This document shows positions 9,660 to 21,199 of a stretch of 64,000 nucleotides of DNA, one piece after another. Made by a program: the position numbers and the translations under genes. The notes under the pieces were generated by a model, which saw only the letters and a list, made by a program, of their open reading frames with translations, was not told the origin of the DNA and ran no database searches. The DNA is taken from assembly GCA_009103225.1 (NCBI GenBank), contig RHPI01002069.1, positions 459,378-523,377 on the forward strand, read 5' to 3'. Source of the DNA: Chlorokybus atmophyticus (lineage: Eukaryota; Plantae; Mesostigma and Chlorokybus algae). Every line of letters starts with the position of its first letter. Position 1 is the stretch's first letter.

Positions 9660-10949
9660 TTGTCGGACAACATGCTCCTCAATATTGCTGCGCTCGCACA
9701 CATGCACCAACCTGCAACCTTGCGGTTGCTGGGGCAAGTTTTGACACTGGCACCATTTGCATTGGAACCTGCGTTCATTGGATTCATTGGCCACGATGTT
9801 GTGGCTGTACAACATTAGCGAGTAGTTGCGCCTTAGGTCATTGGTGAATGTGATCATTGGTGAGCCAATGGCACGTGTTATTGTTTGCGAGCATGTCTCA
9901 TAGCTGGCTGTCTTGCAAGCTTGTCTTGACAAGGGCGGTGAAGGGCTGCAACTCACATCAGTCAGAACCTTGGTTTACATAGGCTGACACCCCAACTTGT
10001 GTTGTTGATTTGTCACCTTGTTCCATGATACCAGTGGTGATAAGGTCAAACCTTGGGTGATGTACAGGCTGATAGATACTTGAGTAATGCATTTGTTCTT
10101 GCAATTGCTGTAAACTTACAGAAAGATTGTTGCCAACAATCACTAGTTTTCATAGCACTCATCGTTTGCATGCACGATGAGGCACTGGTCAATGGTAAAG
10201 TCAATGACAGGACAAGTTTCACAGTATAGTTTCGTTGATACTCAGAGCACAGGTATGCACTGACTTGTTACGCCTTGTAGCAATATTGCGTAACTGTGCA
10301 GTTGAGCCAAACCCAACAGCTGCACCAAGGTGCGACACACGCCACCACATGTGGAGCGACAGGAGTCCCCACCACTGGTCCCGATGAGGAGTCCTAGACT
10401 CGCTGAGGAAGTCCAAGGCAGCTGCATAGTGTTCGTCGGCGTTAGCTTGGCGGCACCTCGAGTGTCGGCCTCTTATTGGTCAGCTTCCGTGCCGCCACTG
10501 CGCCGACGCCACTGCGCCCGTATACCGACACGTCGGCGCCCAAACTCCACATGGCGGCGGTTAAGTTACATCCCGCGCTCATCTGCAGCTGACGTCACGG
10601 AGCGGGCGGCGGCGGCGGCCGCGGGGTGCTTGGCGTGGTTGGCGGCGGCGGGGCTTGCAGGCGTTATCTGAGTTGGAGGAACAACACCTACGGTTGTCGT
10701 GCAGTAGCTTATGCGGAGAGAAGGAGACGAAGAGCCACCGACGCATGGATAGATCTTGCTGTTGAGCTTCTTGGTCTGGTCTGATTCCAACCCGCGCCTG
10801 TGGCCTGCTCGGCTAGTCGCTTCTTGCTGTAACTCGGTGCATTCGGTGCATAGCTTAGGATCAGCTGCTGTTGCTACAAAAGTTAGGTTGCTTGGTTGCC
10901 TGTAGCAGTAGCAGCAAGCTTGCGCCTGCTTGCTGTGCGGGGGACAGAG

Positions 10950-13900
10950 ATGAAGATTATAGACAAGGTGCGGCAGGCGGAAAGCGAGGGGCGGAACTAC
11001 TTCTCCTTTGAGTACTTTCCTCCCCGTACAGATGAGGGCGTGGACAACCTGTTCGAGCGCATGGACCGCATGGTAAGCCTGTCCGAGACATGCACTCACG
11101 TTTTCAGTTTCTCACTTTCTCCCCGCTTTTAGCTGATCATAACAGGGTCAGCGTCCCGTTGCTCTGCACTTGCATGCTGTTCTGCTGCGAGGGGTGTTGT
11201 TTGTCAGCTAGCATTGTGATTGTTATAGCCCAGTCGGGTTCACCTTGCGATGTAGTGGGCTGAGCTGAAAATTGTGCTGTGTTATTATGGTTTGGAGTAC
11301 AGCTGTAGCTGTTCTTTCAGATTGTTTCTTTCAGTCAAACCAAATAGAAGTGTTGAGATGTTGACTTATTTACACGCGCACATTGTGCCAAGGCCCTTAC
11401 CAGTGGTAACAAGTCAGCTGGTATTCGTGTGTGCTGTCCTCCAAGTTGTGGTGCATGCATGATGACACTGGTGGTGCAGCTCATTACTGCTTACGTGCAG
11501 GTGGCTCACGATCCCCTTTTCTGTGACATCACGTGGGGTGCTGGAGGCTCCACATCAGAGTTGACGCTCGACATCGCCAGCAAGATGCAGAATATGGTAT
11601 GAAGTGGTGCTGTGCATTCCTCCTTCTGCTTTGACACACAATGATGCTCGAGTTACACTATGAGGTGCTGCTTGTCGTGTTGGTACTGTTGTTGCATCGA
11701 TGTCTCACCTGGTGTTAAGGCCGGTAGTGCTTTTAGTAGTCACCATTTACTATTAACGATAACTGTTTCAGCACATACTGATTTCTGCACGGTTATGTTG
11801 GGAACAGATTTGCGTTGAGACGATGATGCATTTGACGTGCACCAACATCACGCGCGAAAGCGTGAGTGAGACGATCCGCGCGGTGAAGAAGTCCGGTATC
11901 CAGAACATTCTGGCGTTGAGGGGAGACCCGCCCAAGGGCCAGGACACCTTTACAGCGATTGAGGGCGGCTTTGCATGTGCGCTTGATCTGGTATGTTCAC
12001 GAATGCTCCTTATATTCATGCAGCATGTGAAGTGTGTTTGCAACATGCTGAAAGCAAGAGGGTTGCCTTTGCAAGTTAGAAGACTTCTCTGTGTTCCAAT
12101 CTGGTGTCATGCAGGTGAAGTACATTCGAGCAGAGCATGGTGATTACTTTGGCATAACAGTTGCAGGCTATCCTGGTACGTTTATCCTGGCACATATTTT
12201 GTTGGAGAGCTTGTCTTGGGAGTAGCACACATCAAAGCATGCTGTGGTATAGAGTTGGGCTCGTGTTGCATATGTGTCTACTACCAGCATGCAGATATCG
12301 TGGCTTGGACTCTTGTTGAATGTCCCTTGTTTGCAGAGGCTCACCCGGACTCCATCGGGGAGAGCGGGGAAGCGTCGCAGGAGGCATACCAGAAGGACTT
12401 GCACTACCTCAAGCAGAAGGTGCATAGCTTTGCTGTTATTGTTGCCGACAATGCTCAGAGGTTATTGCGAATGTTGTGTATGTACGCTGAACATTTTCTG
12501 TAAGTGTGCAATGTAGGTAGGAAACTCATTAGGCTGTATTGTTGCGCACAGATTGATGCCGGTGGCGACATGATTGTCACGCAGCTTTTCTACGACGTGG
12601 ACAGGTTTCTGCAGTTTGTCAAGGACTGCAGACTCATTGGCATCAACTGTCCGATTGTGCCCGGCATTATGCCCATCAACAACTATAACGGCTTCAAGCG
12701 CATGACAGGCTTCTGCAAAACAAAGGTGCGTGCAAATTATACTCACATCAAGGTCTAGTAGCTTGTTGTAAGCGTGTACCAGAATTCTTGCAGTTAGGCC
12801 ATCATCTATGACAGCCCTCAAGCAACATCGGATGAAGGGTGACTTTTACGGTAGTGTACGGTCAGCTCAGCCACTGTTGCATTAGTAATATATTTTTGTA
12901 GACGACAATGTCGCCACCGAAACAAGGCACTGGCAACAGTATTGAGTGCACGTACCCATGGGAAAGTATCAAGCCCTTGTACTCAGTTTAAGGTTGTATA
13001 TGTGGTTGTTGCGCTGCAGGTGCCGAAGGAGGTGCATGACGCGCTTGAGCCTATTAAGGACAACGAGGAGGCGGTGAAGGCGTACGGTATCCATTTGGGG
13101 AGGGAGATGTGCAAGAAGCTGGTGGATGCAGGCGTGAAGGGCTTCCACCTGTACACCCTCAACCTGGAGAAGAGCGTGCTGTCCATTCTGCAGCAGCTCG
13201 GCTTCGTCAGCAGCACCCGCCTGCCCCGCGCCCTTCCCTGGCGACCACCCACCAACGCCAGGCGCCACGGCGAGGACGTTAGGCCCATCTTCTGGTAGGT
13301 TTCTTTTCTCATTGACGTTGAGGACACTTGTTGGTTGGATGTTTCATCATCGGGGCATGGTTTGGTTGGCACACGGCAGTACATGGCATATTGCATTGGT
13401 TGCTGCTGGGGAGCCAGTTGATTGCAATCACTTGCTAAGAATGATGCTTTCTTATAGTAATATACTGAGATGCACACGCCGTGTGATCAGACGGGCAGCA
13501 GCATTGACTTGTTGCTGTTATGGAGTAATACCGAAAGCCTTGTGTGCCTGTGCAGGGCAAACAGGCCGAAAAGCTATATCTCGCGCACAGTGGACTGGGA
13601 TGACTTCCCTCATGGTCGATGGGGGGATTCACGCAGTCCAGCGTTTGGAACACTGGCGGACTATCAGGTGCACGAGTCATTTGGCAGTGCAATGGTCAAC
13701 TCCTTTCCGAGTCATGTGGAGCTGTTGGTGTTGGTGTTGGTGTTGACAAGCTGCTGTTGCATTACATACTAGTGCACTCACTTCTTTCCCTTGTTTCCGG
13801 CTGCATCATAGCAGTTCATGAAGCCAAAGTCGAAGTCAAAGAAGATCCGGGAGCAGTGGGGAGTCGACGTGACGTCTGAGGAAGACATTTTTGAGGTGTG

Positions 13901-14889
13901 TGTATGGTATTTGGGTATGTTGTACATGTTGCATATATCTAAGACCATTGACAACAGACGTGCATTGTCGTACGCGTGTCACATGTATGGTTCCTGAGTG
14001 CATGTCCGTCAGGTTTTTGAGAGGTACTGCGCTGGCGAGATCACGGCGATACCGTGGTCAGAGTCGGATGGTCTTCAGCCGGAGAGCAAGCAGATCGACC
14101 AGGAGTTGATGCAGATGAACAAGAAGGGCTTTTTGACAATCAATTCGCAGCCGCGAGTCAATGGCGCACCTTCCGATACGCCCGGAGTGGGTCAGTAATG
14201 ATGTTTAAGCAAGCTCTTGTGCAATGTCGTTTGACGGTGGGGTACCGACTACCTGGAATGTGCTTTGTGTGCAGGCTGGGGCAGAGCCAATGGATATGTT
14301 TACCAGAAAGCTTACGTGGAGTTCTTTACGGGCCCGGAGAGGCTACAGTCTCTGCTGGCGAAGCTGTCTCAGTACCCCAGCTTGACCTACCATGCGGTCA
14401 ACTGCAGGGGAGACACCAAGTCCAATGTGTCACCCAACGACGTGACGGCTGTGACTTGGTATGTGCTGGGTTGACTTGTTTTGCAGCAGGTCCATTGGCA
14501 ACTGTCCGTTGGTTGATTGCGGGAACGCTGTGTTGACGCCGTTGTTCTGCAGGGGAGTGTTTCCGGGCAAGGAGGTCATTCAGCCCACCATTGTTGACCC
14601 GAAGAGCTTTATGGTGTGGAAGGATGAGGCGTTCGACATCTGGATTTCAGAGTGGTCATCCATGTACCCGGACAATTCGGAATCCAAGAAGTTGATTGAG
14701 AGGGTGCGTATTGTCTGCGTTGTGAATACTGTAACATGGAGTTTATGCTGCAAGTGCACTTGCGCTGTGAAGACTGACTCAACCCCACTGACATGCTTTT
14801 CACAGGTACATGACACATATTGGCTGGTCAATATCGTTGACAACGACTACGTCCGAGGAGATATGTTTGCCATTTTCAGGGACTTGTAG
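10950..14889 (+). CDS. MTHFR: methylenetetrahydrofolate reductase, eukaryotic/plant type with C-terminal domain
   Basis: MKIIDKV...[118 protein letters not shown] at 14887-14889. Confidence 0.97.
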
Positions 14890-15636
14890 CGTTATTTGTA
14901 GGTAAAGGGTATCCGCCTGTTGTGCTGCTACAATAGCGCAATTGTTGTGCTATGTTGGCGATTTGCTTGCTCGAATGCCACCCGAGAGTCAGCAACTGGG
15001 TATCGGCTTCACTAGTGTCTGCTCTATGTCAGTTACCAACATTTTCATATGACATCGTGGCAATATACCTTGTCCCGAGTGGAGCCTTGATTTGACTTGC
15101 AGCCTACTGCAGTGGGAATTTCGTGCGATATGTTAGCACTTCCTTGACAATAGTGGCAGGGCTGGGACCTGGTGGCTAGTTAGCTAATGCCTCCGGTTGT
15201 CACTGCAGATGTAAAGACAGCACTGCGTCAAGAGGCTTCTGCTGTGCAATGCTTTCATCTGATGGCATGGCACGTACTGTGGTCAGAAGCTAGATTGATA
15301 GCTTATATGTAAGGAAGCATGCCAAAAATGCATCTCAAGTGACCACTGGCCAGCTAATAGCACAAGCTGGACCCTGCCAGCTTATGTGTAAATAGCTTGA
15401 CTTCAGGGACCTCTCCTGCAGTCAACTACTTGCTTTATTGCTACTGGGCTCTCTATGCAAGAGCTTTATTACTGTGCTTTATGTAAAGCTACCTGTACAT
15501 ATTGCGTTGATGTGAAAAATTGCCTGGTCTCACCGGCATTGGGGACGCCCCTTGATATGGCAGGAACATCTGCTAACACAGCACGCATCAGCATACATAC
15601 CGCCGAGAACAGACCACTGGTTGTTGGCGGCAGCAA

Positions 15637-18600
15637 CTAAGCACTGACCTGTGGTCCGCGAGGAAGCAGGGTAGGGTTGTTGGGGAGCACCGCCATGTCA
15701 CGAGGGTAGTACCTGGGAGTCGGTACCATGTAAGGTGGTGCCATCGGCTGGGGGCTGAAGTTGTTCTGCGCCATGTGGTGGCCCCAGTACGGCGCCTGGC
15801 TGCTGGGTCCCATTCCCGATAGGATAGGGCGTGTCATGAACTGCTGCAACTGCGGCCGCTGCTGCAGCGGCTGAGGTGAACTGTGAATTACAGGCTGCAT
15901 GTCTTTATCGTCAGGTGCGTCCGCACCTTCAATGACTCGCTCAATGCAGCAGACCTCATAAGGGAGTGCGGGCTGCACGACATGGTGATCAGCTACAGTC
16001 AACAGGACTGGCAGCAACTTGTGTTTGCCGCTTGTGAGCACACTACTCCAAACCAGGTGCGCTGTACCTTGAGCTTTAAGTCGTGCAAAATGACCTTGTA
16101 GCTGGCTTCGACCATGACACTGCCACCGTTCTTGCACTGTCTACGGAAGCTGAACAAGCCCTTCAGAGCGATGGGCACCTCCTTGTCTTCCGAGGCGTCT
16201 TTGATGATGTCCGCGCGCAAACCGTTGAAGAACATTGGAAAGTCCACTCTGACCTGTGTGAGTGTGTGTGTGTATAGTACCACTCAGTACCCCAAGCATG
16301 TCAGTTTAGCAGCCAGTCAGTCCTTCGTTACCTGTTCCACATCTTCAGGATGCGCATGGAGCATGAAGTGATGGCCGACGTACTCGAGAGGCGAGTACCC
16401 ATAATTCTCTTCACAAGTTGTAGACATGCGAAGCACCTGATAGCAACACATTTGTCAAGCCCATTCAGCTGACAACAGTGATGCACATGACCATGCTGAC
16501 GATCCCACAGGCAAGCCAGGACCTTGCCGTTCGGGTCAAACAGCAACAACACATCCGGCCAGCACGCCCCGAACGGTCCACAATCTGGCCATTTTGCCGT
16601 CCTCAGCGCCAGCTGTGCCGCCGTCTCCTGAGTAGTTGGCAAAGGGCTAACAACTTCGTCGACAGAAAGCTTCTGCTGGCGCTTGGCGAGCATGTCCCGC
16701 TCGTCTGTGGAAGCGAGGTACACGCATTGCGTTGGTGGACTAGGCGATTGGTTACGCATTTCCATGGTCTGCTTGACAACAACCGCTTTATTAGTCATCT
16801 AGTCACTGCCAATACACATGCACCAAACACAATGACACCCAGATACGCAGTGTACCTGCTTGACCCAGTGCTCGTAGTCTTGCTGAGGTCGTGTTGCCAT
16901 TACATTACGCTCCACCACAACATACAGCAACCGGTCGCTCCTTGGCTCCACGCCCGTCCGCTTGGTCACCTCGTACCAGATGAGCCTCCCGTCCTTGTGC
17001 ACTCGTCTGTAGCGCAAGCAGTGCGCTCGAGATGGGTCCAACGGTGCATCTGGCCCCGATGCAGTAGACTGCAAAGATTTGCACGACCGTGTTGGTTACC
17101 TCATGCACAACGTTGAGCCAATTGTTAATATGAAGTGAAAGCCTACAGCATACCTGATGGATGACCCAAAGGTCCTCAAAAAAGATGGTGTCGAACCCTG
17201 GCTTTCCAACCAGCTCGCTGGGCCTGTATCCCAGCTCGTCAAATACCGTATCCGATACATGCGCTGTGAGTGGCGTGTTGATGTAAAAGAGCCAGATGAC
17301 ATCTTGAGATAGCCTCGCTGCAGCTCCCAACAATGACATCTCGTCTTCCAGAGCCTTCTTCTGAGAGATGTCGCGCGCAACCATCATCACCTGAGAAACA
17401 GGTTTTCGTGTTCTTGGCTGAGCCTGCAAGCTTACAAGTCCACGTAGAAAACCAATGCTTGTCTACATGTAAGCAGCACCTTGACTGCTCCTTTAGCGGA
17501 AGTCACAACGCGTACTCCGCTTGCTGTCATCCAGATGATAGTATTATCACGACGTACGAAACGGAACTCAAAAGGCTTGGGCAGATCCATTGTTGCCTGC
17601 CGTACGCATAGGCAAGGTTACATAACAAGCGCATGACAGCAGTTCTTAGTTATTCACACAAACCTGTGGGTTTTGGACGCGTTCACGTATCACAGCTTCA
17701 ACATGAAGTCTGTCCTGCAGTACTCAAGCAGACGGAATCAGTTCTGCCAAAACGCTCCACTGTAGAGTGATGCACGGCCAACATGCATCCCATTACCTGC
17801 GTCTTAAGCAGTTCAAAGGCATTGCGACCTATCAACTCTGCCGCCCGGTAACCAAGAATGGCTGCTCCCGCAGGAGAGACACTCGTGATCATCCCGCACG
17901 GTTGCATCTCCAACTTAAAGTCGTGCGCGAGCTCGTCGAACACCCTGGCGCGCTGCAAGTCCTCTTCCATGGCTCTGTCAAACAAATGTGCCATCCAGTG
18001 AACTTCAGTTCTGTAAACAAACATAAACCGCGCAAAGTTGTTGAGTAATGCTAACGATCTCAAGCACTTGCTTCAGGTCTTTGCCGGTGACTGAGGTGCC
18101 AACAGACTCGTCTCTCATTTGCCGGTAGGCTATCCAGCCGGCCTGATAGCCCGGCACCTCCGAGGATGCATACTTGGGGGATGAGTTGCAATCACCAAGT
18201 CCATGAAGACCACCACTCCGGCGCTCGCGAACTTGCTCAGCCGGTTTGCGAAAAACTTGCCTCTGCCAGCAGCAAAAGCAGCAAAACCAATATTGCGCGT
18301 GAATGCATGATGTGCCGTACTGGTGATGAGGCAAGCCATCCCGAATGATACACATGCCACGTGATGTACTCAAATAAGAACATGTCACAGGAGTCATCAT
18401 CATCTGCGTGACAACATGTTAGTGCAGCAGAGCAGGCCGTACCTCACAGACGAGTTGCATGCCCACTCGGCGTCGCTGTTCCTCATTCTTGAAGGCCTCA
18501 TGTAGTTCCTGGTTGCGGACGAGATGCACGTACGACTGCCCGTTGTGCGCTACGAGGCTCGCACCGGACTTCAGCAGCAATTTGATTATGTCCACTTGCT

Positions 18601-19685
18601 TATTCGCGATGGCCATGTCCAAGGCGCGAAGCCCCGCCCTATTCTCCGCATCCACATGGAACTTCCCCGAATCCAGCAAACTCTTGCACACGCGTTTGTG
18701 CCCGTTGCTTGCAGCCAGGTGCAGTGCAGTTGTCCCATCTCTGTCGGGTGCTGCCGACACAACCTGGAGGATGAGACTTGTTGCCATCAGAGCAGAGCAG
18801 AAAGCAAGGCAAGACACAAGTCAGTGGAGTGTCAAATATGCGTACCCGTTCGAGCAGAAGGTTGACCACCACTGCATGTCCAGCATTGGCGGCGGCCATA
18901 AGCGAGCTCCATCCTGCAATGTTACGAGCGTCGGCGTCTGCACCGGACTCGAGGAGCGCTAAAACTGCGGCAACATGCCCCAAGTTGGCCGCGAAGTATA
19001 TCGCTGTCTCGTGCGCTGCATTCCGCGCCTACAATGACGACACATTTGGTCAACTGTTATCTGCAGAAGTCAAGCTAAGCAATCCAAGCTTGCGCTCTGG
19101 AATCACCTCAAGAGCAGCGTGTGAGTGCGCAAGCACAGGCACAATGTCTGCACTGCCGGTTATTGCAGCCAACATCAATGGCGTGTGCCCCGCAGAGTTT
19201 GCGGCGTTGACATCTGCACCCGCAGCTACCAGGTCGGTCACCAGCTGCGAGGAAAATCAAAATTGAGCCTTGGCAAACCTATGCAGCTGGTACAGCTGAC
19301 AATGCACAAAGCCACTGCCCACCTTCAGGTCACCACCCGAGATGGCCAAACGCAATAGCGAACACTGGTCTTCCCCAACCTCATCGCCCACCTCCGCCTG
19401 CCAGAGCGCGGGCGTAAGTTGGAATTGACAAACAGCAGTGCTCAGTGCCTGCTGATGCATACAACGTCACTTCAATCAGCTGACCTGCAGCACAACGCGT
19501 AGCATGTTGACAGTAGAAGGGGAGGCATGCGCGCAAGTTTCTGCCACGGAAATGGCTGCGTGGGCGAGCGCCAGAACCCATGCCAGTCGCGCTTGCGGAC
19601 CTGCGCTCTTGGCATCTTCGCTGGTGACCGGGAACGACGACAGCTGCCGTATGGGGCATGCCAACGCCTCGCGCAGCAGCACCAT
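15637..19685 (-). CDS. ankyrin-repeat + three PAS/PAC domain protein with Pro/Gln-rich C-terminus (5' end uncertain)
   Basis: About six ANK repeats (e.g. GHTPLMLAAITGSADIV, GTTALHLAASNGHKRVCKSLL). PAS1 ITSVSPAGAAILGYRAAELIGRNAFELL...FEFRFVRRDNTIIWM. PAS2 VSDTVFDELGYRPSELVGK...YRRVHKDGRLIWYEV. PAS3 MSTTCEENYGYSPLEYVGHHFMLHAHPEDVEQ...FRRQCKNGGSVMVE. Exons join through GT-AG sites. Confidence 0.8.
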
Positions 19686-21199
19686 CACTCTTACGAAACC
19701 ATCCGCTTAAAGGCACACTGTCTGCCTTTACTGAACCCTAACCCACCCTTCAGACCTCGCTGAATCTGACCTCAAGAATCCAATCGAGCACCTGTTGGGA
19801 TCAACACAATCGGTCGCATGCATCAAGTAGTGGTAGTGGACAAGTTGCGGCAACAGCGTGCATAACGCTGCTGAATGTGACACTGCATTGTTCATACAGC
19901 ATTAATTAAGTGACGGTGTAGAGATGTGCCATGCAGTGCACATAAATGCAACAGTGAGCGCCTTTATGTGCTGCGCACAATAGCATGCACTGCAAGCAAG
20001 CGGCATCCGTCTTTGTTGTAATCGGCCAGTGTGAACCTGCTGCATGCCGGCTAACTAGCTATGCAATTGACGAGAAGTGCCACAAGGCGGCAATGCCAGC
20101 GGCTCCCAAAGACCTGTGCACCTAGGGAAGCACCTCACACGCCAATGACTTTAACACACTCACCTCACTCGCCCCCGCTCTGCCGCCGCCGCTCATGTCA
20201 AGTAGATTGCAGCCAAGTAAGTCCGCACAAGGCCAGATGGCCTGGCCAGCGCGCCGTAGCTGCGCAAGTCCTCTCAAGCGCCACACCTCCGCACGGAATT
20301 GCAATGCTACACCATCACACCACCGCTGTTCCACGTTGCCGTGAAACCGTGCTCCCGCCTCCGTCGCCGCCTCCGTCACCTCCACCGCCACCCACACCGC
20401 CGCCGCCCGTCCACGCTCCGTCGCTGACAGGCAGCGGCCGCAGCTTCAAGCTCACGTTTTGGCATTGAGCTTTTAGTTTTGGGTTGCGCTCATCATCAAT
20501 GCTCCACAATTAGGGCTGACGAAGCACACTTGGTACCAGACTGCCAAAATGCAAGCCCCTCGTTATATATGGTACCACTGCACGTCACCTCCTACAGGAC
20601 AATCAAATGAACCTCATTGGGTGGATCGGCACTGTGCATGTTCGAACGACATCTTTACCACGCCAAGGCGGATTGCAGGATGCGGCCTGCTGAACCAGAC
20701 CAGGCCTTCCAAGTCGGTGGAGGCGCTGTTCAGGCGCTGTCATGAACCAGGTGAACCAGCAACTCAACTCGATACTCAACAAGTGTCAAGCAGGTGAACT
20801 GACCCGGCAGGTATCCGGGCACGTTGCAGTCAACTATTGGTTTGAGCACGTCGCTTGGGTGTCAGGTTGGGGAGAAGCGCAATCACAAGTTGTGATCCAC
20901 GGTGAATCAGTCACAACTGCGCGATGCACGCGATCTGTTAAGTTTAGTTACCGGGTAGGCTAGATGTTGAGTTGACGTCGTTGAACTTGGTAAGGGAGCA
21001 TGCGTTGGCAAGCGAACCGCCGCGAATTGTGGGCATTCAGTTCAATGGCTTCACTCGCGGAAGCAGCTGCGCAACACGTGCGCTGCGTACGAGTTGATGA
21101 AAGTATGGTGTGCGCTTTTGGTTGGCTCTGGTACACAAACTGTGAACTTGAGACATCTTATGGTAGCCTGCGGTTAAGGCGCTTCTTGAAGCCCTCCTG

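Follow-up and report, generated by a model that had tools for sequence, protein, structure and literature searches.

In plants and algae, PAS domains are known mostly within photoreceptors and kinases. PAS/LOV sensors that lack an output domain and signal via protein contacts are represented by Arabidopsis PLP/LLP and, in bacteria, by short LOV proteins such as PpSB1-LOV. In prokaryotes, the multi-PAS "S-box" sensors are histidine kinases and GGDEF/EAL proteins of Chloroflexota, cyanobacteria, proteobacteria and archaea; PpsR of Rhodobacter sphaeroides (PDB 4hh2) is a triple-PAS repressor whose PAS array works via oligomerisation and partner binding. In animals, PERIOD and the bHLH-PAS proteins ARNT, BMAL1 and CLOCK are PAS regulators devoid of enzyme activity; PER has no DNA-binding domain, while CLOCK and ARNT carry Gln-rich tails.

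The locus described here, Chrsp17S02837, is a real, expressed gene of Chlorokybus atmophyticus without an encoded enzyme domain. It lies on the minus strand of a 64,000-nucleotide window of contig RHPI01002069.1, the whole stretch of DNA that was analysed; all positions below are those of this window and all features are on its minus strand. Chlorokybus branches at the streptophyte base, and the gene is therefore of interest for how bacterial-type modules were put together into the signalling repertoire of this lineage: an expressed, duplicated PAS array with no other visible output than an ankyrin (ANK) stack and a low-complexity tail would be an example, among green organisms, of PAS signalling that relies on protein binding alone.

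A single spliced transcript

Two independent studies yielded spliced transcript contigs, which define the locus as a single 17-exon gene spanning 15243 to 20383. In each run (X1 and X2), one 3388-nt spliced contig bridges 16 introns and carries every ANK and PAS exon; separate ANK and PAS transcripts, which an earlier preliminary description had named as a possibility to be checked by RNA, were not seen, and the contigs hold no additional kinase or cyclase exons. All 16 introns have canonical splice sites (15 GT-AG and one GC-AG). Exon 1 (20164–20383) contributes 5′ UTR alone, and the main coding sequence (15489–19685, exons 2 to 17) forms a continuous reading frame of 948 codons from the ATG at 19685, already correctly proposed as the start, to the TAG at 15491–15489. 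The 3′ UTR occupies 15243–15488, the contigs ending at 15243 and 15278.

Three points of the gene model differ from previous readings. The TAG at 15639–15637, taken in the preliminary description for the stop codon, is located inside intron 16 (15570–15648), whose joint (15569|15649) is the same in both runs; exon 17 adds 26 further codons (MFLPYQGASPMPVRPGNFSHQRNMYR) up to the true stop codon at 15489–15491. The candidate 5′ exon beginning MSGGGRAGASE (20196–20164) is indeed part of the transcript; it does not encode the N-terminus of the protein but opens an upstream reading frame of 24 codons (uORF, 19750–20196) in the 5′ leader, which starts at the ATG at 20196, crosses intron 1 (coding parts 20196–20164 and 19791–19750) and stops at 19750 in exon 2. 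Finally, intron 7 (17975–18071), the GC-AG intron and the sole coding intron outside phase 0, is missed by the public annotation, which places a GT donor at 18107 and thereby removes 12 residues (SVGTSVTGKDLK replaced by E). In the transcript isoform these residues interrupt a helix that AlphaFold2 modelled on the annotated product, which makes that helix uncertain. The annotated product (936 aa, hereafter P0001) is otherwise identical to the 948-residue transcript protein. The practical gain is a gene model corrected at the true stop, in the 5′ leader and at this GC-AG intron.

Ankyrin stack, PAS array and tail

The N-terminal part contains six ankyrin repeats (residues 77–275; 18536–19370, introns included), where about six had been counted by eye. 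Pfam assigns Ank_2 (E 8e-29) and Ank (E 7e-23) to P0001, and AlphaFold2 predicts six ANK helix pairs with pLDDT above 94, in line with tandem 33-residue helix-loop-helix repeats matching ANK profiles. The stack is 30–38% similar to consensus-like repeats, a generic level of resemblance. It is preceded by a helical region (residues 22–70; 19389–19622) modelled by AlphaFold2 at pLDDT of about 55–75 and thus with modest confidence, which could possibly cap the repeat stack, and followed by a predicted long single helix (residues 284–322; 18215–18511) rich in Arg and Lys (QRRR...RK...RERR).

Three PAS domains follow. Pfam matches P0001 to PAS_3 (E 1e-21, in three stretches), PAS_9 (E 4e-18), PAS (E 1e-13) and PAS_4, and AlphaFold2 builds three PAS folds (the fold being defined by an antiparallel sheet of five strands flanked by helices) at P0001 residues 377–480, 504–607 and 696–815. 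PAS1 (17370–17919; residues 389–492 of the transcript model) is matched by PAS_9 and PAS and is predicted with pLDDT above 90. It is joined to PAS2 (16904–17300; residues 516–619; Pfam and AlphaFold2) by a helical linker (17310–17366; AlphaFold2 helix 138–156 of the model) bearing an S-box-like motif (ARDISQKKALEDE), for which alignment A2 gives the consensus RDITxRK. PAS1-PAS2 is a bacterial-type tandem joined by an S-box helix and aligns colinearly with prokaryotic arrays, 134 alignments covering 220 residues or more. A disordered linker (16559–16747; P0001 residues 631–693; pLDDT below 50) leads to PAS3 (15934–16552; residues 708–827; PAS_4 and PAS_3; AlphaFold2 pLDDT of about 80), which contains an inserted helical segment as well as the motif FSFRRQCKNG. 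GRNAFELL and EVCCIERVI, the PAS sequences quoted in the preliminary description, are both present as given, the former in PAS1 and the latter in the final PAS strand.

Beyond PAS3 extends a low-complexity tail (residues 828–948; 15492–15933, including intron 16) recognised by its composition (Pro 19%, Gln 11%, Met 9%, and Tyr also), in agreement with the Pro/Gln/Met-rich tail first noticed; its modelled part, up to residue 835, has pLDDT below 50. Pfam, AlphaFold2 and fold searches revealed no kinase, cyclase, receiver or DNA-binding domain in the protein. Pfam matches on P0001 are limited to ANK and PAS families, with no HLH match (the N-terminus being the ANK stack) and none of the HisKA/HATPase_c or GGDEF/EAL domains that bacterial relatives carry C-terminal to their PAS arrays; the predicted folds agree, and the absence of a catalytic or DNA-binding output domain that had been proposed from the letters alone is upheld. 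Judging from the structural model, a hidden enzyme domain has no room, every ordered segment left without assignment being too small for one.

Two classes of cofactor-bound sensor were considered for the PAS array. A LOV photoreceptor is rejected: the GXNCRFLQ motif is replaced by GRNAFELL in PAS1, GKPGFDTI in PAS2 and GHHFMLHA in PAS3, with no cysteine at that place, which bears out the non-LOV reading of PAS1. A heme sensor of the FixL/EcDOS type, which would call for a conserved proximal histidine on the F-alpha helix, finds no clear support: His421 of PAS1 lies near the FixL/DOS proximal-His position, one residue off the spacing by manual count, but its column holds Ala, Arg or Gln in relatives and Ala in the paralogue described below and is thus not conserved, and sequence matches to DOS and FixL are not significant (E 0.06–0.3). 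No cofactor motif or signature was found in the sequence of the PAS array. The HPxD motif common in relatives is lost from PAS1 and PAS2, which read KTQD and FFED.

A divergent paralogue in the same alga

Among the matches listed from about 5.8 billion proteins, a single other protein combines ANK and PAS: Chrsp21S03327 of the same alga (P0044, 1242 aa). It is colinear with P0001 and about 23–26% identical to it, and shares the N-terminal ANK stack, a basic linker (with KKKKKK in the position equivalent to the Arg/Lys-rich helix), the colinear PAS array, a disordered M/P/Q/Y-rich tail and the lack of any enzyme domain; it differs in its longer tail and in an additional, highly divergent PAS-like segment that separates the ANK stack from the array. 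PAS3 has a specific counterpart there: its sole phmmer match is to residues 840–949 of P0044, the last PAS of the paralogue (Smith-Waterman score 150, z 26). Six ANK repeats, a PAS array ending in a PAS of the insertion type with the motif FRRxCKNG, an M/P/Q/Y-rich tail and the absence of an output domain are found in both proteins; going by their sequences, they are ancient colinear paralogues, and a small two-member ANK-PAS family is proposed for them.

No ANK+PAS protein from outside Chlorokybus appeared among the matches listed, either in word-index searches with the whole protein, its PAS array and the PAS array of the paralogue, where ANK and PAS matches are very numerous and the best 120–150 of 8000 scored candidates were considered, or in an exhaustive HMMER search with exon 11, where 284 weaker matches lie beyond those listed. 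Feature searches of the ESM Atlas returned generic PAS clusters, including one diatom PAS cluster at a score of 0.96. Nothing relevant emerged from the literature, whether searched for ankyrin and PAS in algae or streptophytes or for the two gene identifiers. The architecture, which had been described as unfamiliar, is indeed an unusual combination of modules that are each very common. Both PAS and ANK are promiscuous, so that little can be predicted from the architecture by itself.

Candidate function and known systems

The best explanation overall, to which we give slightly more credence than doubt, is that the product of Chrsp17S02837, one of the two ANK-PAS paralogues, is an enzyme-less sensor-scaffold signalling by protein binding; by analogy with other PAS proteins, it would probably be dimeric. 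From N- to C-terminus, such a scaffold would consist of the helical cap, the six ANK repeats, the basic long helix or linker, PAS1-PAS2, the disordered linker, PAS3 with its insertion and the Pro/Gln/Met/Tyr-rich disordered tail. Its PAS array would dimerise through helical linkers, as in bacterial sensors, PpsR, PER and ARNT, and may bind a small ligand; the signal output would then be an altered choice of partners by the ANK groove and the low-complexity tail. The structural neighbours of the PAS array are consistent with this: the best Foldseek neighbours of the three-PAS model (E down to 8e-16) are multi-PAS proteins, namely PpsR, DosP, ARNT/HIF, PER and CLOCK:BMAL1, which act as dimers or via protein contacts. 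At the level of single domains, PAS1 superposes on ARNT PAS-B with a VIA-align Z of 17 (rmsd 2.0 Å over 108 residues) and on PpSB1-LOV with a Z of 15, and the best sequence match of PAS3 among solved structures is ARNT (E 4.5e-5). Since a basic linker with short basic stretches is common to both paralogues, a role as a nuclear co-regulator is plausible by analogy.

The same lack of an output domain in cis would also be expected of a regulatory or targeting subunit acting on an enzyme in trans, in which the ANK stack docks a kinase, phosphatase or ubiquitin ligase and the PAS domains tune it, as in a split PAS-kinase sensor. Some of the generic ANK relatives are annotated as phosphatase-6 regulatory ankyrin subunits, and others are fusions of ANK with a kinase (P0162, P0160 and P0181 being examples of these relatives), but the ANK similarity is as generic as noted above. 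This unlikely alternative overlaps with the sensor-scaffold and differs from it solely in naming an enzyme as the partner.

Equally unlikely in our estimation is a pure structural adaptor, whose PAS domains would serve dimerisation or interaction without sensing, as do most PAS-A domains of bHLH-PAS proteins. The best structural matches (ARNT, BMAL1 and the PAS domains of PER) work mainly through protein contacts, and both the missing cofactor motif and the loss of HPxD from PAS1 and PAS2 fit such a role. However, PAS-B pockets of the ARNT and HIF kind are able to accommodate ligands, so that the fold is compatible with sensing, and the retention of three PAS domains in two paralogues only about 25% identical suggests more than simple dimerisation.

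A bolder extension of the sensor-scaffold, and one that we regard as a long shot, is that the two Chlorokybus proteins found a green-lineage class of enzyme-less PAS co-regulators, functional analogues of animal PER/ARNT/NCOA, in which ligand- or redox-gated PAS dimers would recruit partners via the ANK stack and the Met/Gln/Pro/Tyr-rich tail would serve transcriptional activation or the formation of condensates; if true, PAS-based nuclear signalling would have been invented independently in an early-diverging streptophyte.

That the gene is functionless, being either the decaying rest of a sensor kinase or cyclase stripped of its output or two genes fused in annotation or assembly, is very improbable: its closest PAS relatives among the matches listed are histidine kinases and GGDEF/EAL proteins and it occurs among those matches in one genus only, but the reading frame is intact over 17 exons, the same spliced contig was recovered in two studies, the C-terminus is a low-complexity tail and not a truncated enzyme, and the putatively ancient paralogue retains the same enzyme-less layout.

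As a candidate enzyme-less sensor-scaffold, the algal protein can be set beside each of the known systems. In comparison with PLP/LLP and PpSB1-LOV, which bind flavin via the LOV motif, all three of its PAS domains lack GXNCRFLQ. With the prokaryotic S-box sensors, it shares the PAS1-PAS2 tandem and the RDIxxxK helical linker, colinear and about 25–36% identical; among the matches listed its nearest PAS relatives are prokaryotic, in databases where prokaryotic PAS arrays dominate by number, and horizontal transfer is not proposed. The S-box sensors have no ANK repeats and end in HisKA/HATPase_c, GGDEF/EAL or receiver domains, whereas the algal gene is interrupted by 16 spliceosomal introns and encodes no output domain. 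PpsR, which ranks first among the Foldseek matches of the three-PAS model, likewise has an array of PAS domains, one that operates through protein contacts, but it lacks ANK repeats, ends in an HTH DNA-binding domain and is about 11% identical in sequence. By comparison with ARNT, BMAL1 and CLOCK, the algal protein carries ANK repeats in place of a bHLH at its N-terminus and three PAS domains, not two; it also has weak sequence matches to PER. As sequence similarity to these animal PAS regulators is marginal, the resemblance is one of functional analogy and not of membership.

Transcript structure and revised gene ends

The ANK-PAS gene is eukaryotic, lies on the minus strand and is rich in introns. 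Its product is already present in public annotation as a predicted protein, eukprot jgi/Chlat1/2111/Chrsp17S02837 of Chlorokybus atmophyticus (here P0001, 936 residues, whose numbering is used for its domains). In each of two public RNA runs from separate studies (X1 and X2), one 3388-nt contig maps to 15243–20383 with sixteen stretches left out. Once alignment ambiguity is allowed for, these skips are all canonical (15 GT-AG and one GC-AG); the contigs thus represent spliced RNA, in which all ankyrin (ANK) and PAS exons are linked within one molecule. Assembled from 17 exons, the transcript has a longest ORF of 948 codons, which opens with the ATG at 19685 and closes with the TAG at 15491–15489. 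Most introns measure 67–97 nt, and 14 of the 15 coding introns (introns 2–16, window 15570–19484) are in phase 0, the GC-AG intron 7 being the exception; such symmetric phase-0 exons would suit exon shuffling.

The preliminary description of an ANK and triple-PAS protein is confirmed, with its 3′ and 5′ ends corrected. The TAG at 15639–15637, taken there as the stop codon, lies inside intron 16 (15570–15648), and exon 17 contributes 26 further residues beyond that position. MSGGGRAGASE, the candidate coding 5′ exon, is not part of the protein either: its ATG (20196) is in exon 1 and runs into a TGA at 19750 once spliced to exon 2. The resulting 24-codon uORF (19750–20196), which crosses the exon 1/exon 2 junction within the 326-nt leader, may regulate translation of the mRNA. 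P0001 and the RNA-supported product are identical apart from the junction of exons 7 and 8 (17975–18107). Here splicing starts from a GT donor at 18107 in the annotation and from a GC donor at 18071 in the contigs of both studies, giving a transcript form with 12 more residues; a minor isoform using the GT donor at 18107 may exist and is compatible with the contig data.

Two features border the transcript. At its 5′ end and promoter region (20320–20440) lies a G-rich GGN-type repeat (GGCGGTGGAGGTGACGGAGGCGGCGACGGAGG) that reads as a proline-rich ORF on the plus strand and is probably not coding. On the other side, a convergent, spliced methylenetetrahydrofolate reductase gene occupies about 10900–15221 of the plus strand (Pfam MTHFR, E 6e-24; MTHFR_C, 2e-24), its contig ending at 15221, about 22 nt from the ANK-PAS transcript 3′ end (15243).

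Domain organization and predicted folds

Pfam detects in P0001 ankyrin families (Ank_2, E 8e-29; Ank, 7e-23) and PAS families (PAS_3, 1e-21, in three stretches; PAS_9, 4e-18; PAS, 1e-13; PAS_4, 3e-7), and no others. P0001 served as the full-length protein in the searches and structure predictions, and single exons were also used as queries; the assembled 948-residue sequence was used to work out ORF and intron phases and to compare its PAS domains with one another. AlphaFold2 modeling of residues 1–345 with an alignment of ANK relatives yields six helix pairs at 77–275 (pLDDT above 94), preceded by a helical N-terminal region of lower confidence (22–70) and followed by a long basic helix (284–322). 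Residues 345–835, modeled with an alignment of 40 PAS segments, are predicted to form three PAS folds: PAS1 (377–480) and PAS2 (504–607), both with pLDDT mostly above 90 and joined by a helical, S-box-type linker, and PAS3 (696–815), which carries a helical insertion and reaches a pLDDT of about 80. Residues 631–693 and the start of the tail are predicted to be disordered; the remaining tail is of low complexity (Pro 19%, Gln 11%, Met 9%, plus Tyr). The top Foldseek matches are multi-PAS proteins (PpsR, DosP, ARNT/HIF, PER, CLOCK:BMAL1 and FixL; E down to 8e-16), and PAS1 superposes on ARNT PAS-B with a VIA-align Z of 17 (rmsd 2.0 Å over 108 residues). In Pfam and the AlphaFold2 models of P0001, no ordered segment remains that could house a kinase, cyclase, receiver or DNA-binding domain. 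Spliced contigs, Pfam and structure prediction thus agree with the original reading of ANK repeats and three PAS units devoid of an enzymatic output, and the contigs of both studies place these exons in a single transcript with no added kinase or cyclase exon.

A paralogue and distant relatives

Exon 11 (first half of PAS2) was used in an exhaustive HMMER search of 1.84 billion representatives. The gene's own product was the one match under E 1e-30, ahead of prokaryotic multi-PAS proteins of about 30–36% identity. Ten matches that were looked up come from Chloroflexota, cyanobacteria, Rhodospirillaceae, an archaeon and metagenome sequences; those matches that were scanned with Pfam are multi-PAS proteins, most of which end in histidine-kinase domains. 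Among the matches listed in word-index searches, the whole protein retrieves ANK-only proteins and its PAS array prokaryotic PAS-only sensors.

When the proteins collected from the searches were scanned for both halves, only one other protein matched: P0044 (Chrsp21S03327, 1242 residues), also from Chlorokybus, whose domains are of the same types and nothing else (Ank_2, E 3e-22; PAS_3, 4e-30). Its own PAS array retrieves prokaryotic PAS sensors only, among the matches listed. The two proteins are colinear across the ANK stack and PAS array (23–26% identity), and the last PAS of P0044 is the sole database match of PAS3 (Smith-Waterman 150, z 26, far above every other PAS pair), sharing with it an FRRxCKNG motif. 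Both proteins have M/P/Q/Y-rich tails and basic clusters in the linker between ANK and PAS. In P0044 the ANK stack and the PAS array are separated by an additional segment (about 440–592), which resembles none of the PAS domains of the two proteins significantly (z below 2). Colinearity, the PAS3 pairing and the shared tail and linker traits indicate that the two genes form a small, old family, which among the matches listed is confined to Chlorokybus. A literature search found no paper on Chrsp17S02837 or its architecture, in which two very common, promiscuous modules are combined in a new way.

A putative sensor-scaffold

The functional interpretation first offered is partly supported. As proposed, PAS1 is not a canonical LOV photoreceptor domain; the LOV cysteine motif is absent from all three PAS domains. 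His421 of PAS1 lies near the proximal-histidine position of FixL and DOS and is conserved neither in relatives nor in P0044, no significant sequence matches to heme PAS structures were found, and the sequence features of P0001 indicate no ligand. Two alternatives seem less likely to us, about equally so: a pure adaptor devoid of sensing, and a regulatory subunit whose enzyme would be provided in trans. That the gene is decaying or artefactual is unlikely because the ORF is intact and spliced in two studies and the paralogue is conserved.

The ANK-PAS protein is probably a non-enzymatic, dimeric sensor-scaffold, in agreement with the earlier idea; its output would be the binding of partners via the ANK stack and the low-complexity tail, possibly in the nucleus. 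Its basis is a resemblance to PAS arrays that work as dimers and signal through protein contacts, seen in the structural neighbours, in the S-box-type helical linker and in the long helices predicted to flank the array in P0001.
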